Shown one piece after another: positions 23,393 to 50,618 of a DNA stretch of 64,000 bases. This stretch comes from Octopus sinensis. Its lineage: Eukaryota. Each line of letters opens with the position of its first letter. Within the stretch, counting starts at the first letter, position 1. Under the pieces are notes generated by a model. That model saw nothing but the letters and a program-made list of their open reading frames with translations, was not told the origin of the DNA and made no database searches. Both the position numbers and the translations under genes were made by a program. The DNA is taken from contig NW_021834418.1 of NCBI RefSeq assembly GCF_006345805.1, positions 1 through 64,000 on the forward strand. Reading direction: 5' to 3'.

Positions 23393-23890
23393 GTGTGGCT
23401 GGTGGACAATGGTACGGCTACACAGGTGGCGGAAGTAATCTCTTGTGTCTACCCAACGATCCCATTTGGGCCAATTATACGACAGAAGTTGAAATAGGTG
23501 GTTACATTTATGGCAGTGAATATCAACTGGAAACATACCTAACTAATAAACTCTTTTCTTTTGCTAACGCTGAATCAATTCATCAACACAACGTTCCGTG
23601 CGCTGTCTGTTTGACACGACAACCTGCTGTTGTTATGATGTTACCAGCCAGGACAAAGTGTTACCCTGGCTGGACAGCTGAGTATTCAGGATATTTGATG
23701 GCTGAGCATTATAAGGATAATGGCAGACTTGAATATGTGTGTGTGACTATGCACCAGAAGCTGATCCAGCAGGTTACAGAAACGAAAATGGAGCTACTTA
23801 TATTTCGTTCAGGCTGCTTGTGGTTCATTGCCATGTCCACCGTATGTCAATGGTCAAGAATTATCCTGCGTTGTGTGCAGTAAATATTGA
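23393..23890 (+). CDS. Copy A exon 4 (NC1-like domain), two 1-nt deletions near the 3' end
   Basis: ctag|GVAGGQWYGYTGGGSNLLCLPNDP...EYVCV[D]YAPEADPAGY...CGSLPCPPYVNGQELSCVVCSKY*; AATAAA at 24022. Confidence 0.82.
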
Positions 23891-25586
23891 ATAGAAATTT
23901 ACGTTCATTTCTATATGAAAATTTATGTCGGCGAATCATAAATAATATTATAATAAAGCAACATATACGTTTCTTGTAATTGTGTTTCGCAGTATTCTAA
24001 TCCAAGTAATATATGTCGTTAAATAAATTGCGGCTACAAGTTTTCAGAAAATATTCAAAACGAAACAACAGAGACGTCATAGAATGTGACAAATAGCTTA
24101 ACAGAACGATGTAATCCTCGGGGAATGATTCTAGAATACATTGTATGAGGTTCAGTTTATCAAATTTAAAAGTTGAAATAAAATGATGATTCGTTTAAAT
24201 GTTTTTGTATTCCGTCTTAAAATGAAAACAATCCCCAAATGAAACACCTCCGTACAAATATATCACCCTTTCATGATCAATCTTCAGAAAACACGATAAA
24301 AGCTTATAACTAACATCACTAAATCATGATGGTTTAATAAAAAAATACTCCCATACGTATCAATGTAACTACAATCGATGCGATGACAGCACTGCAATCC
24401 AATCGCGGATATTACCTAATAAAGGATATTTGATATCCACTGAAGGAATACCACAAAATGTTGACTACCTAACTACTAGTCAGGTTACTAACACATTGAA
24501 GTTTTCACGAAACACTTTCGACAAGGGTACAAGTACACGTCCCACGATGAACTACTTTCAACCTACATTCAAATATTCCCGCTTTTCTACAAAAATCACA
24601 CACACACAGCCTCGCGTCACATTACACACGCAGCCTCTCATCGTTTCCTGAAAACTGATGTGCCAAAATAAAATATGAAACCACCAAGAAATATGAGTAG
24701 ACTTCAGGAACAGAATCAACCGAATCTACAGCAACACCACAAAACATCAAGTTCAACAAATTATCTCCGTCTGTAACATAAAACTATCAAACTCGCAGAA
24801 GAGGAACTTGCTTCGAGATACATGCATACAATAACTGTAACACACATAAACGACTTAGTAAGGAAAGGAACACCACTTATAAAATATACATTAGGTGGAA
24901 TCAGTGCAACATGTTGAGTGTTTCACACTATACCCAGCATGATTGCTCCTTGTATGTGGGAGTTTGTAGAATGGCTGCCAGATAAACGAAGGTATCCGTG
25001 GAAAGAGGGATCTGTGGGTGGCAGCACGTGTTTTCTCCGATTAATTGCGTGCCATAAGAATGCTCGATTGTGAAAAAGCTAGAGAAAAAGAATAATAATT
25101 AAGTAATATGAAAGCACGAAATGCAAATTGACAAATGAATATATGGAAACATTCAACATGGCGTTTCCAGTGAACAGTATTAGCGCTCAGTATTAGGCAT
25201 AAGCAATTTTTAGGTTCGTTAAAATGTGCTAATGGCATATTTCAAACTCTAAAGGCAAATTCAGTGCAGAAAGCGGCAAAAACAGCATATCAGTCCAGTG
25301 CTGCTCCCTATCGGGTTCCAGTTCAGTCGTTATCAAAAGAAAATACCGAAGAGGGGAATATCTGGACAAACTTAAAGCCATAGCTTTAACTTAAACATAG
25401 TCAACAACAACGAGTAAGTGACGCCATTAGAGCGCCAGGCTGGAGTCTGTCGTGAGTTACCTCCCTTCGTTATTTCTCTTTGATAAATTCTTCGCTAGAG
25501 GAGTTGACTTCAACCTTGTGCCCCAACAGTAACTGCGGTCGCTCGTACGTGCCCGCATTTTCCCCGCATATTTGTGTGTATGATTC

Positions 25587-26903
25587 TGTGTGTGTGTGTG
25601 TGTGTGTGTGTGTGTGTGTTTGTGTCAGTGAGTGTGTGTGTGTCGGTGTGTGTGTGTCACTCTGTGTGTGTCAGTGTGTGTGTGTGTGTGTCAGCGTGTG
25701 TGTCAGTGTGTGTGTGTGTGTGTGTGTGTCAGTGTGAGTGGCAGTATGTGTGTGTCAGTGTCAGTGTGTGTGTGTATGTGTGTGTGTGTCAGTGTGTGTG
25801 AGTTTGTGTGTCAATGTTTGTGTGTGTGTGTGTTTATGTCAGTGTTTGTTTGTGTTTGAGTGTCAGTGTGTGTGATTGTATGTGTGTGTCAGTTTGTGTG
25901 TATGTCGGTGTGTGTGTGTGTGTATGTGTGTCAGTGTCTGTGTGTGTGTGTATGGATTTCAGTGTGTGCGTGTGTATGTGTGTCAGTGTGCGTGTATGTG
26001 TGTGTGTGTGTGTTTGTGTGTGTGTGTGTGTGTATGTATGTCAGTGTGTGTGTGTGTCAGTCATTGTGTGTGTGTATGTGTGTGTGTGTGTGACAGTGTG
26101 TGTGCGTGTGTATTTGTGTGTGTGTCAATGTGTGTGTTGTGTGTATGTCAGTGTGTGTGTGTGTGTATGTAAGTGTGTGCGGGTGTATGTGTGTGAGTGT
26201 GTGTTTGTGTGTGTGTGTGAGTGTGAGTCTGCGTGTTGTGTGTGTGTGGTGTGTCAGTGTGAGTGGCAGTATGTGTGTGTCAGTGTCAGTGTGTGTGTGT
26301 GTGTGTATGTGTGTGTGTGTGTCAGTGTGTGTGAGTTTGTGTGTCAATGTTTGTGTGTGTGTGTGTTTATGTCAGTGTTTGTTTGTGTTTGAGTGTCAGT
26401 GTGTGTGATTGTATGTGTGTGTCAGTTTGTGTGTATGTCGGTGTGTGTGTGTGTGTGTATGTGTGTCAGTGTCTGTGTGTGTGTGTATGGATTTCAGTGT
26501 GTGCGTGTGTATGTGTGTCAGTGTGCGTGTATGTGTGTGTGTGTGTGTGTTGTGTGTGTGTGTGTGTGTATGTATGTCAGTGTGTGTGTGTGTCAGTCAT
26601 TGTGTGTGTGTATGTGTGTGTGTGTGTGACAGTGTGTGTGCGTGTGTATGTGTGTGTGTGTGTCAGTGTGTGTGTGTGTGTGTATGTAAGTGTGTGCGGG
26701 TGTATGTGTGTGAGTGTGTGTTTGTGTGTGTGTGTGTGTGTGTGAGTGTGTGTTTGTGTGTGTGTGTGTGTGTATGTGTGTCAGTGTGCGTGTATGTGTG
26801 TGTGTGTGTGTCTGTGTGTGTGGTGTGTGTGTTGGCGTTTGTGTCAGTCTGTGCTTGTGTTTGTGTGTGCCAGTGTGTGTGTGTGTGTGTCTTTGTGTCT
26901 GTG
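25587..26903. repeat. Complex (GT)n/GTCA microsatellite with a ~530-bp internal duplication, upstream of copy B
   Basis: Block starting gtgagtggcagtatgtg at about 25733 recurs at about 26258. Confidence 0.9.
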
Positions 26904-48401: not shown

Positions 48402-48475
48402 AACCCGGTCTCGGATCATTGTATACCCGATGGGGCAGAACAACTTGTCCTCCTTATTCAAACCTTGTATATACG
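48402..48475 (+). CDS. Copy C exon 3 (74 nt, 1 nt short)
   Basis: KPGLGSLYTRWGRTTCPPYSNLVY[D]-G; tatacg versus tatgacg. Confidence 0.75.
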
Positions 48476-50112
48476 GTTAGTATACTTTATATTTCTGATC
48501 TCTCATTCTCTTTTTGTTTTACTCTTGTTCTCTTTTATACCTCTCATTCTCTCTTTTTATTGCCTTTCTTTCTCTCCCACCCTCCCTCTCACGCACACGC
48601 ACACACACTCACACTCTGCTGGGTTGTCTGACATAAACATTCTCTAATCCTTTTATGATGTGTCACGTTTCAAACGTCTATACCTGTAGACTATACAGAC
48701 ACTACACAAGACTGCTTACTCCTTTGTAGGTATTTGGTCAAATCAGAATATTATATGTTGTCTACTACGGACCAAGTGAAAAGGATGCTAACTGGTGATC
48801 AATTGTACAGGCTGCGGATAGTGGTATTGTACGTGAGTGACTAGAGCTGAAAAGTGGCCACGTGACTATCATTAACTAGAGTGCCCAATGATCGTAGGTG
48901 TGGGCTAAATTGAAAAGAGTCTATTAGAATTGATGACTGACTGTAAATGGTTAATGGAGTGAACGCACAATGTAGAATGAGGACTGGACAAGCCACATAC
49001 TGTAACTGACGGGAAAAGCTAAGGACGTTATTCATTAAGTAAAATATAGAGAGACTAAATATTAGTGAGAGAACACAACAGAGTACAGAATGCACTTCTA
49101 TTCTTCTCCGCCTCACCGAAATCGTCCTATCGCTGAAACCTTGCTCTTTTCATGCACCACATCACCTCATTAATTATCCAGTATATCTTTGTAAGGTAAT
49201 TCCGAAACTTCCAATTCAAAACTGCTGCTACAAACCGCTTCCCAATCAACCTCACGTTCCTTTTAAGCTCTGAATCTGCTCTCTATAAACCCTACACGTA
49301 TCCTTTATCGGTCGCCCACTCCGCCGTCCATTCATCTTAAGCACTACGCCGTCACTGAACCTCACAATTTTTTCCCCCACCTCGTTTCTGTGTATTGCAT
49401 GAAAACATGTCTCTGTGATCATAACGTCTTTGTAAGCCTGATTCGTCCGAGTCTAAACGAGAGGTTTAGCCACTGACTCTCGTATGATCGACTAAAAAAC
49501 ATTTCATCGACGGCTACCCACCACTTCTCTGCATCTCGTCGTCTCCCCTATTGTCCTACTCAAACCTCCTACAATTTCCACCACCCAAAATATCCCCCCG
49601 TTCACACGTGAACATCTTTTCCATTTCGGATAAACACGAGTGCATGCGTATAAAATATCTTTCTATTTCTCCATCTATTGACATCCACCGTATGACATAC
49701 ATGTATGACATGACATACTATATATTGTTTGCATGACATACCCCATGCAAGCATAATAATAATCCACGTCGTAACAACAAACCTTACCCGTATACACACA
49801 GCATATATATATATACATATATAAATGGAGTTGCAGAAACAAACGTACCGCATTACTTTGAATATACTTGTTGCTTACTTCGATATAAATATATAATATT
49901 TATTATATATATATACATAGTATGACTAGGTAAAGACGCACCTATGATTCAGCAACACACAGCTTACACTAAAATAAACAAAACATATATACACCACAAT
50001 TCGTTCACACGTGGCTAAACATGACTTCTTTTAACTGTAATGAATTTTTCCGTTCTTTCATATATAATTTTTCTTAACATCTTTTTTTATTGATTATTCT
50101 TACCAATTCTAG

Positions 50113-50618
50113 GTGTTGTGGTGGACAACATTCTGCACAAACTGGTGGCGGAAGTAATCTCTTGTGTCTACCCAACGACCCCATTTGGGCCAAATTATAC
50201 GATAGAAGTTGAAAAAGGTGGTAACATTTATGGCAGTGAATATGAACTAATTATACCAACAACAAATAAACTCTTTTCTTTTGCTAACGCTGAATAATTC
50301 ATGATCACAACGTTCCGTGCGCTGTCTGTTTGACACGACAACCCGCTGTTGTTATGATGTTACCAGCCAGGACAAAGTGTTACCGTGGTTGGACAATTGA
50401 GTATTCAGGATATTTGATGTCCGGTCATTACGGGCATAAAGGTGGACATGAATATGTTGTGTGGATTATGCACCAGAAGCTGATCCAGCAGGTTACAGAG
50501 ACGAAGATGGAGTTCGATTATATTTCGTTCAGGCTGAGTGTGGTTCATTGCCATGCCACCGTATGTCAATGGTCGAGAATTAACCTGCGTTGTATGCAGT
50601 AAAGTAAATACTGAATAG
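50113..50618 (+). CDS. Copy C exon 4 (several 1-nt indels)
   Basis: GV[A]GGQHSAQTGGGSNLLCLPNDP...SGHYGHKGGHEY...CVVCSKVNTE*; AATAAA at 50745. Confidence 0.75.

Follow-up and report, generated by a model that had tools for sequence, protein, structure and literature searches.

Introduction

In collagen IV, the non-collagenous NC1 domain carries twelve cysteines in six disulfides, takes part in a domain swap between a β-hairpin and a variable docking region (VR3), and builds a head-to-head hexamer that contains a chloride ring and is cross-linked by Met93-Lys211. NC1-type domains are also found in spongin-type proteins, which the literature treats as structural matrix components. The spongin short-chain collagens are reportedly dealt with in Exposito 1991 and Aouacheria 2006. 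Here, we describe a tandem array of genes of this spongin type in Octopus sinensis. The DNA analysed (the window) comprises 64,000 nucleotides, positions 1 to 64,000 of contig NW_021834418.1 (assembly GCF_006345805.1), and holds four head-to-tail paralogous genes on the plus strand, of which A, B and C are complete and D is partial. Sequence differences among the encoded NC1-like domains are concentrated in four discrete loops, and the interpretation of these loops is the subject of this report.

Large, diversified gene families are well known in recognition. Snail FREPs, bivalve C1q-domain proteins and amphioxus VCBPs are examples, and octopus itself, which lacks adaptive immunity and is famous for its expanded protocadherin repertoire, has arrays of clustered protocadherins. 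As for the NC1 domain, the spongin form has been reported to share seven cysteines with collagen IV, to add three of its own and to be devoid of the HSQ motif (PMC5395295), and a stand-alone NC1 gene, of collagen IV type, has been reported only in Ctenophora (Fidler 2017, PMC5395295). A description of the octopus array, of its loops or of a tandem expansion of short-chain collagen C4 was not found in the literature.

Results and Discussion

Four hypervariable loops in the paralogous domains

The last exons (exon 4) of the paralogs extend from 23393 to 23890 in A, from 35749 to 36244 in B and from 50113 to 50618 in C, with no further copy in the window. Within them, four patches, all on the plus strand, were delimited from a family entropy profile that is dominated by 33 database proteins. 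Patch 1, the loop after strand 2 of subdomain 1, reads CAATGGTACGGCTACACA (QWYGYT) in A (23407–23424), EWFDNA in B (35763–35780) and QHSAQT in C (50126–50143). Patch 2 is the loop before strand 4 of the same subdomain (A 23482–23505, TEVEIGGY; B 35838–35861; C 50202–50225) and patch 3 the loop after that strand (A 23527–23553, LETYLTNKL; B 35883–35907; C 50247–50273). Patch 4 follows strand 2 of subdomain 2 and is thus the structural counterpart of patch 1 (A 23701–23730, AEHYKDNGRL; B 36054–36082; C 50420–50449, SGHYGHKGGH). Patch 3 is an addition to the original prediction, whose coordinates were all recovered in the window, as were its counts for A against C of 10 differences in the 18 nucleotides of patch 1 and 12 in the 30 nucleotides of the subdomain-2 patch, and the identity of both copies over the 35 nucleotides following patch 1. 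Its peptide readings are correct for the letters of the window, but the subdomain-2 patch of B is TEGSGNKGRH in the reference assembly, the 'TR' and the missing base of the window being paired or single indel errors. The close similarity claimed for the surroundings of the exon in A and C holds for the 3′ flank (3.8% mismatches); intron 3 is only moderately similar, with 5–10% mismatches and many gaps.

Among the three copies, 31–42% of the nucleotides differ in the patches against 5.5–9.8% in the rest of the exon. Clustering of the differences in the patches is pronounced in the intact reference versions of the three copies (odds ratios 6–8, Fisher p 5e-10 to 7e-13), and a scan that makes no use of the patches, taking the maximum number of differences per 18-nucleotide window, gave a permutation p ≤ 0.001.

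The hypervariability predicted from three copies proved to be a property of the whole octopod family at fixed positions. The entropy profile of the 33 octopod proteins together with the three window copies peaks at the same four loops, namely at domain positions 30–35 (p1), 55–62 (p2), 69–78 (p3) and 128–137 (p4), with minor variable sites at 14–20, 113/116, 157/160, 165–167 and 178–180. Across the 33 proteins identity amounts to 84% in the scaffold and to 36% in the patches. The length of p1, p2 and p4 is fixed and p3 alone varies, by 1–3 residues; the residue alphabet of the loops is restricted to aromatic residues, His, Gly, Ser, Asp and Asn. In an AlphaFold2 (AF2) model, p1 and p4 both follow strand 2, of repeats 1 and 2, respectively, which bears out the proposed equivalence of these loops. 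Strand 4 of repeat 1 lies between p2 and p3, whose repeat-2 counterparts are the minor sites at 154–167. A joint variation of the 'paired' loops, on the other hand, was hardly detectable, as p1 and p4 distances across the paralogs correlate weakly (Mantel r 0.15).

At positions 31, 32, 34, 130 and 133 the entropy among octopods is higher than that of the cross-phylum family. Other phyla semi-conserve the motifs S-x-Y-x-H at p1 and H-Y-x-H-K-G-R at p4, which hint at a conserved His/Tyr site (for a metal, an anion or a ligand) that is diversified in octopods.

Window copies compared with reference copies

Three loci were fetched around related genes, a 33-kb locus of O. vulgaris (L001), a 106-kb locus of O. 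sinensis (L002) and a further O. sinensis locus (L003), which is CM016876.1 at 4.05 Mb. The segment 23134–37730 of the window is colinear with L003 and differs from it by 0.86% mismatches and 1.93% indel events (BLAST-based counts). The 278 indels comprise 174 deletions and 104 insertions; 236 of them (85%) concern a single base and about two thirds lie in homopolymer context. Such a low ratio of mismatches to indels is typical of an unpolished long-read consensus and not of evolution; apparently, the window is an assembly rich in indels, from O. sinensis or a relative very close to it. In every window copy the frame of every exon is broken, and paired indels give the appearance of amino-acid substitutions, such as the apparent replacements WGQY, MNVP and 'TR' in window B. 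The third patch of C, with IIP versus YLY, may in part be window noise.

Exon 4 of A in CM016876.1 (L003:383–880) is intact and equals that of window A except for the two single-nucleotide deletions of the latter, one of which has an adjacent mismatch. Exon 4 of C is 98% identical to the intact reference copy L002:81698–82198, which has none of the five single-nucleotide indels of window C nor its 5-nucleotide insert, and whose patches 1 and 2 are identical to those of C. Window B contains a TAG at 35877–35879, in place of an invariant Tyr, as well as four single-nucleotide deletions, none of which is present in its reference copy (L003:11856–12356). The latter has another stop instead, a TAA at the Glu of KNENG, and its patch 1 is identical to that of window B. 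Ten full-length exon-4 copies of the reference were examined; nine are open frames and one, this copy of B, is not. A pseudogene reading was rejected for A and C, for which intact reference copies exist; B may be a pseudogene, given a different premature stop in each assembly. Consensus errors were likewise rejected as the source of the patch differences, since the same patch sequences are present in intact O. sinensis reference copies; patch sequences of A, B and C recur in an independent assembly. For genome scans, a caution follows from these comparisons, namely that the apparent breakage of these genes by frameshifts is in all cases due to the assembly.

Two further discrepancies between the assemblies were observed. 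Eight sites in the last 100 nucleotides of B (36140–36245) differ between window and reference, the window being of C type there; B may be a decaying copy or may have undergone recent allelic gene conversion. The closest counterpart of gene C (window 44668–54191 against L002) is a copy at 5.32 Mb that shows 2% mismatches, and the gene after B in the reference is not C but an A-like copy in truncated form (L003:22096–22485); this reflects variation of the array in copy number or structure, or else a misassembly.

Divergence of the loops and probable exchange among the paralogs

Divergence was quantified by Nei-Gojobori counts in eight intact copies, and the window copies give the same picture. 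The proportions of non-synonymous (pN) and synonymous (pS) differences are 0.25 and 0.33 in the patches and 0.036 and 0.116 in the scaffold, respectively. Patch pN (0.25–0.39) is thereby 2–4 times the synonymous divergence of the scaffold (0.11–0.13), with a ratio of patch pN to scaffold pS of about 2.1 in the intact copies and of 2.6–3.4 in the window copies, and it exceeds the mismatches of intron and 3′ flank between A and C (4–10%). Counted by columns, 66 non-synonymous and 22 synonymous changes fall into 33 patch columns versus 40 and 33 into 133 scaffold columns. The scaffold ratio pN/pS (ω) of about 0.3–0.36 indicates purifying selection.

Silent sites take part in the excess. Synonymous codon states amount to an excess of 0.67 per patch column versus 0.25 per scaffold column (permutation p 0.0004), one and the same amino acid is written with different codons in 18.7% of the patch comparisons versus 8.0% elsewhere, and silent divergence is altogether 2–3 times higher inside the patches. 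Because the silent sites of the patches are over-diverged as well, the ratio pN/pS within the patches amounts to 0.6–1.3 for the window copies and to about 0.75–0.9 for the intact copies. Under a PAML-type model that uses one synonymous rate, the patch sites would probably be flagged, whereas under site-wise synonymous rates they might not.

Individual copies are mosaics of loops. The exon Os_34188 shares 96% (p3) and 100% (p4) of the nucleotides with Os_22620 but 67% at p1; with Ov_3131 it is 100% identical at p2 and 44% at p1, and with Os_67981 96% identical at p2, while its p1 and p4 are shared with neither Ov_3131 nor Os_67981. Distances at p4 are uncorrelated with those at p2 and p3. The four-gamete test finds 47% of the informative site pairs incompatible, and the 3′ flanks of the copies are heterogeneous; they form two haplotype classes, unrelated to each other, whose membership does not follow the loop types. 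These patterns point, at the level of sequence, to frequent exchange among the array members. Of the two processes that the original prediction had offered for the patches, diversifying selection or patch conversion, the loop mosaics fit conversion; by the threshold of that prediction itself (dN/dS of 1 or below), a within-patch ω of about 0.7–0.9 does not support classical positive selection. The interpretation given there is supported in part. Between species, a single O. vulgaris/O. sinensis exon pair in the fetched loci was verified as orthologous; its three amino-acid changes in 33 patch codons versus two in 133 scaffold codons are too few to weigh. Best-match protein pairs across the species are uninformative, with a near-invariant scaffold and incomplete annotated sets.

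Protein family, architecture and fold

Among 535 protein hits, the best are Octopus 'short-chain collagen C4-like' proteins (O. sinensis and O. vulgaris, E 1e-111). Annelids, cnidarians, bivalves, brachiopods and amphioxus have homologues that score E ~1e-50, with values of 1e-46 to 1e-53 for the 'short-chain collagen C4-like' proteins of Dendronephthya, Mytilus and Branchiostoma. By homology, the genes are thus members of the spongin 'short-chain collagen C4' family with an NC1-like domain and without the Gly-X-Y part. Runs of at least four Gly-X-Y triplets were absent from all frames of the window (regular-expression search) and from the 39 octopod proteins scanned; of the 74 homologues that were aligned, 20 carry collagen repeats (Pfam Collagen), and no octopod member is among these 20.

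Full-length octopod relatives have about 255 residues and consist of a short N-terminus, a hydrophobic 19-mer, a charged stalk of about 30 residues and a disulfide-rich head domain of about 185 residues. The 19-mer (Kyte-Doolittle >2.1) is located at residues 15–33 in most full-length members and lies within a long helix in the AF2 model; it is probably a signal anchor, which would make the proteins type II membrane proteins. Ten cysteines are invariant, at domain positions 15, 43, 94, 97, 114, 141, 168, 173, 184 and 187, and none of A, B and C contains an HSQ motif. This set matches the seven-plus-three pattern of the spongins, with a tentative assignment of the three spongin-specific cysteines. 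In the octopod segment aligned by hand to residues 65–71 of collagen IV, whose hairpin disulfide pair is C65–C71 / C176–C182, no cysteine is present. An N-Y-T glycosylation sequon just 5′ of patch 2 (window 23470–23478) is near-invariant in octopods and not in other phyla; it suggests an extracellular location of the domain. The sole expression datum found for the family is a peptide of one member that was detected in O. vulgaris ink (PMC10142993).

Sequence searches reveal little of the fold. Copy A matched no Pfam family at E ≤ 1, none of the 74 family members matches Pfam C4 (PF01413), and no NC1 chain was found by PDB sequence searches with a single sequence (phmmer) or with the 74-sequence profile (hmmsearch). 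HHalign to collagen IV gave a weak local match (probability 39%, E 3e-4) across the CAVC / C-x-GW / GY junction. The AF2 model (mean predicted local distance difference test score 86.5) consists of two five-strand repeats at an offset of about 98 residues, and a Foldseek search of the PDB with it yielded nothing but collagen IV NC1 chains among the top 37 hits (lowest E 3.6e-6, probability 0.90–1.00, template modelling (TM) score 0.30–0.43). According to the model, the domain has an NC1-like fold of two homologous β-rich subdomains.

In order to place the loops on this fold, the domain was aligned by hand to the human α1(IV) NC1 sequence, which is 100% identical to PDB 1li1_A and provides the numbering; the conserved cysteines and the HHalign junction (CAVC...C-x-GW...GY to α1(IV) 108–141) served as anchors. 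Patch p1 then corresponds to residues 36–52 (E40 loop), p2 to 66–77 (chloride loop 74–78, R76), p3 to 84–93 and p4 to 146–162. The residue at which p3 ends, M93, we take to lie in collagen IV's trimer–trimer interface and to form the cross-link across it. The 74–78 loop and R76 are located on the face where two NC1 trimers dock, and E40 and R76 form a salt bridge (PMC4878091, PMC6527180). The hypervariable loops thus probably cluster on the face opposite the stalk, equivalent to the head-to-head docking face of collagen IV. A membrane anchor, a disulfide-rich head, the N-Y-T sequon and diverse distal loops would together fit a putative specificity-determining surface.

Interpretation of the loop diversity

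In the best reading of these data, which we consider somewhat likelier to be right than wrong, the paralogs possess specific loops whose diversity is maintained in the face of gene conversion, which at the same time reshuffles them. Scaffold and flanks would be homogenised, and the loops reassorted, by unequal crossing-over and conversion between copies, and selection would preserve, and probably promote, loop sequences specific to each paralog. Loops would thus keep deeper genealogies than their surroundings, at silent sites too, and would act as specificity determinants, either in partner choice between NC1-like heads or towards an external ligand. Such deeper genealogies would explain the silent excess inside the loops. 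Pure neutrality is insufficient because the loops evolve above the neutral rate, and positive selection on point mutations alone is insufficient because of the silent excess. Several points weigh against this reading. The within-patch ω of about 0.9 (0.44–1.46 for pairs of window copies) makes the codon evidence for positive selection equivocal, and p2 and p3 are the most variable parts across phyla as well, so that their diversity is partly ordinary loop tolerance. Recombination has to be read from the mosaics and the discordant flank classes, because a neighbour-incompatibility permutation in the manner of the pairwise homoplasy index found no decay with distance (p 0.41), incompatibility being uniformly high. 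Moreover, sequence profiles connect the domain only weakly to collagen IV (HHalign probability 39%, no Pfam C4 match), the TM-scores are modest, and the placement of the loops on the docking face was mapped by hand.

Explanations that dispense with selected loop specificity have to account for the same rates. Relaxed constraint, by which tolerant loops drift neutrally and the contrast results from strong purifying selection and homogenisation of the scaffold, agrees with a within-patch ω of about 0.9, with the variability of p2 and p3 in other phyla and with the length changes of 1–3 residues tolerated in p3. Neutral loops, however, cannot exceed the neutral rate, yet patch divergence, silent and replacement, is 2–4 times the scaffold synonymous divergence and above the mismatches of intron and flank between A and C; gene conversion should moreover homogenise unprotected loops along with the scaffold, p1, p2 and p4 are fixed in length and restricted in residue alphabet, and Y32, H34, H130 and H133, conserved in other phyla, are diversified in octopods, all of which renders this explanation unlikely. 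A local mutational process, in which the loops are hot spots of mutation or template switching and silent and replacement changes are raised alike without selection, would account for the 2–3-fold rise of silent divergence by about the same factor as that of total divergence. We regard it as very improbable, since exact loop sharing between otherwise different copies indicates exchange and not de novo mutation, exon 4 of A including its loops shows no substitution between the assemblies apart from the one mismatch beside a deletion, and no targeting repeat, palindrome or motif turned up, although no search aimed at one was made. Least credible of all is that the diversity stems from consensus errors of a noisy assembly or from pseudogene copies. 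The single-nucleotide frameshifts in every window copy, the stop in B, which differs between the assemblies, and the 1.9% indel events against the reference are what such an origin would produce, but the patch sequences recur in an independent assembly, nine of the ten full-length reference copies are intact, and the scaffold ω of about 0.3–0.36 indicates purifying selection; only B is perhaps decaying.

The remaining alternatives concern what the loops would recognise. They may set which NC1-like heads assemble side by side or dock head to head, the array being a code for combinatorial self-assembly or cell–cell recognition and not a sensor of foreign ligands; this is a tentative proposal, less probable than not, and draws on the restriction of fold matches to collagen IV NC1 chains, on the location of the patches on the docking face in the hand mapping and on the predicted signal anchor, which would point that face away from the membrane. 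The collagen IV NC1 domain itself sets chain stoichiometry via its β-hairpin and VR3, and its trimers dock head to head. Against this proposal, the spongin-type NC1 has been reported without the domain-swapping region (PMC5395295), and the segments of VR3 and of the hairpin are not known to coincide with the patches. Doubtful, too, is a germline-diversified repertoire for pattern recognition or allorecognition whose loops would bind glycans, microbes or non-self. A tandem multigene array in which discrete hypervariable loops sit on a scaffold held rigid by disulfide bonds, a loop composition like that of antigen-binding loops (Tyr, Trp, His, Gly, Ser, Asp, Asn), the octopod-invariant N-Y-T sequon with the extracellular location it suggests and the peptide in O. 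vulgaris ink (PMC10142993) would agree with it, whereas the identity of exon 4 of A in the two available assemblies, bar the two deletions of the window, and the within-patch ω of about 0.7–0.9 do not.

Returning to paralog-specific loops maintained against gene conversion, a more far-reaching form may be envisaged, in which a combinatorial cell-surface identity code resides on a head derived from collagen IV, or in which the family is a germline-diversified sensor of non-self. In the former case, membrane-anchored oligomers with a hypervariable distal face would dock head to head in a paralog-specific manner, as in NC1 hexamers, and would mediate self or partner recognition in neurons, suckers or skin, analogous to clustered protocadherins. 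Taken together, these possibilities are speculative and improbable at present.

Gene structure and surroundings of the array

A tblastn search with a full-length relative (P0005) resolved four exons per gene and the partial fourth gene D. Exon 1 encodes the Met and the hydrophobic stretch, exon 2 a short linker, exon 3 (74–75 nucleotides) ..PGLGSLYTRWGRTTCPPYSNLVYD, and exon 4 the remainder of the domain. Gene A (765–23890) is composed of exon 1 at 765–908, with the Met and the hydrophobic anchor, exon 2 at 14734–14785, exon 3 at 20915–20988 and the exon 4 given above. In gene B (27323–36244) exons 1 to 3 are located at 27323–27466, ~30248–30298 and 33877–33950, and in gene C (41915–50618) at 41915–42056, 46225–46275 and 48402–48475, exon 4 of C including the 5-nucleotide AGTAA insert in the window reading. 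Gene D (53590–63428) is represented by exons 1 (53590–53732), 2 (59542–59592) and 3 (63354–63428); its exon 4 is past the window end. All coordinates refer to the plus strand.

A minor variable stretch in exon 3 surrounds the first cysteine (approximately 20951–20974, plus strand). In A it is TTCPTNSS, with an N-S-S sequon; the other three genes, B, C and D, have T(S/T)CPPYSN. A second sequon is gained or lost as the stretch alternates between PPYSN and TNSS/RNSS (A: ~20960–20970).

The gene period in the window is about 12–14 kb, and in O. vulgaris, as well as at two loci of O. sinensis, intact exon-4 copies follow each other every 12–20 kb. A distance of 1.2 Mb on a single chromosome separates the two O. 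sinensis array sites. Of L001, no more than about 4 kb aligns to L002 at ≥95% as a single orthologous block, and the turnover of the array between the sister species O. vulgaris and O. sinensis seems, from these alignments, to be quick.

The array is embedded in DNA rich in microsatellites and retroelement remains. Intron 1 of gene A contains a GC-rich block at ~5000–13500 (GC 0.43–0.49 from about 6 kb, versus ~0.37 around) with several minus-strand open reading frames of 200–300 residues, for which a Pfam search returned no match; the block is probably a frame-broken mobile element, and because of its insertion gene A spans 23 kb. Within gene D, intron 1 harbors a retrotransposon insertion, a 492-residue open reading frame on the minus strand (56489–57967) with a reverse-transcriptase domain (Pfam RVT_1, E 2e-33). 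An internal duplication within the intron of gene A (14090–16600 versus 18066–20272) provides a second exon-2-like segment at 18141–18191, NRVISKKSLDDKPDDTP, besides exon 2 at 14734–14785. Degenerate long GT-rich minisatellites lie 3′ of each gene (25570–26910, 38150–40090, 41100–41500 and 52260–53180); they translate as CVCVCV / MYVCMYVC runs, are common to the repeat units and could serve as substrates for unequal exchange.

Comparison with known systems

With the spongin short-chain collagens, the octopus proteins share clear sequence homology (E ~1e-50 to cnidarian, bivalve and amphioxus members) and a C-terminal NC1-like domain of two subdomains with ten cysteines and no HSQ motif; the spongin family as such is found in non-ecdysozoan invertebrates. 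Unlike them, the octopod members are devoid of the Gly-X-Y part, start with a predicted signal anchor, are encoded in tandem arrays at the two sites described above and possess hypervariable loops. In octopods, it seems, the collagen part was dropped, the NC1-like head was placed on a predicted membrane anchor, the gene was amplified into tandem arrays, and diversification took place at four loops, including positions that other phyla conserve.

Collagen IV NC1 is the only fold family matched; like the octopus domain, it is built of two homologous subdomains, and it shares the CAVC / C-x-GW / GY junction. The octopus domain differs by the absence of a Pfam C4 match, by ten cysteines instead of twelve, and by the absence of the hairpin disulfide, the HSQ motif and an attached triple helix, the TM-scores being 0.30–0.43; furthermore, the domain-swap element has been reported lacking in spongins (PMC5395295). 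In collagen IV, variable regions direct chain selection and trimers dock head to head (PMC4878091, PMC6527180). If the octopus loops set the specificity of binding or assembly, they would constitute a new recognition scaffold and a natural experiment on partner choice at the NC1 docking face, with a bearing on collagen IV chain selection. The stand-alone gene of Ctenophora resembles the octopus genes in its NC1-type domain without a collagenous domain; the octopus genes are spongin-type, predicted to be membrane-anchored and massively duplicated.

Finally, the octopus family exhibits the tandem array and the confinement of variability to loops by which diversified recognition-receptor families are characterized, and the array suggests the genomic signature of a specificity-generating receptor family. 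Like these families and the clustered protocadherins, it combines large tandem arrays, a conserved scaffold, discrete variable surface regions and probable reshuffling by gene conversion, whereas its fold is unrelated to theirs and the resemblance is architectural only.

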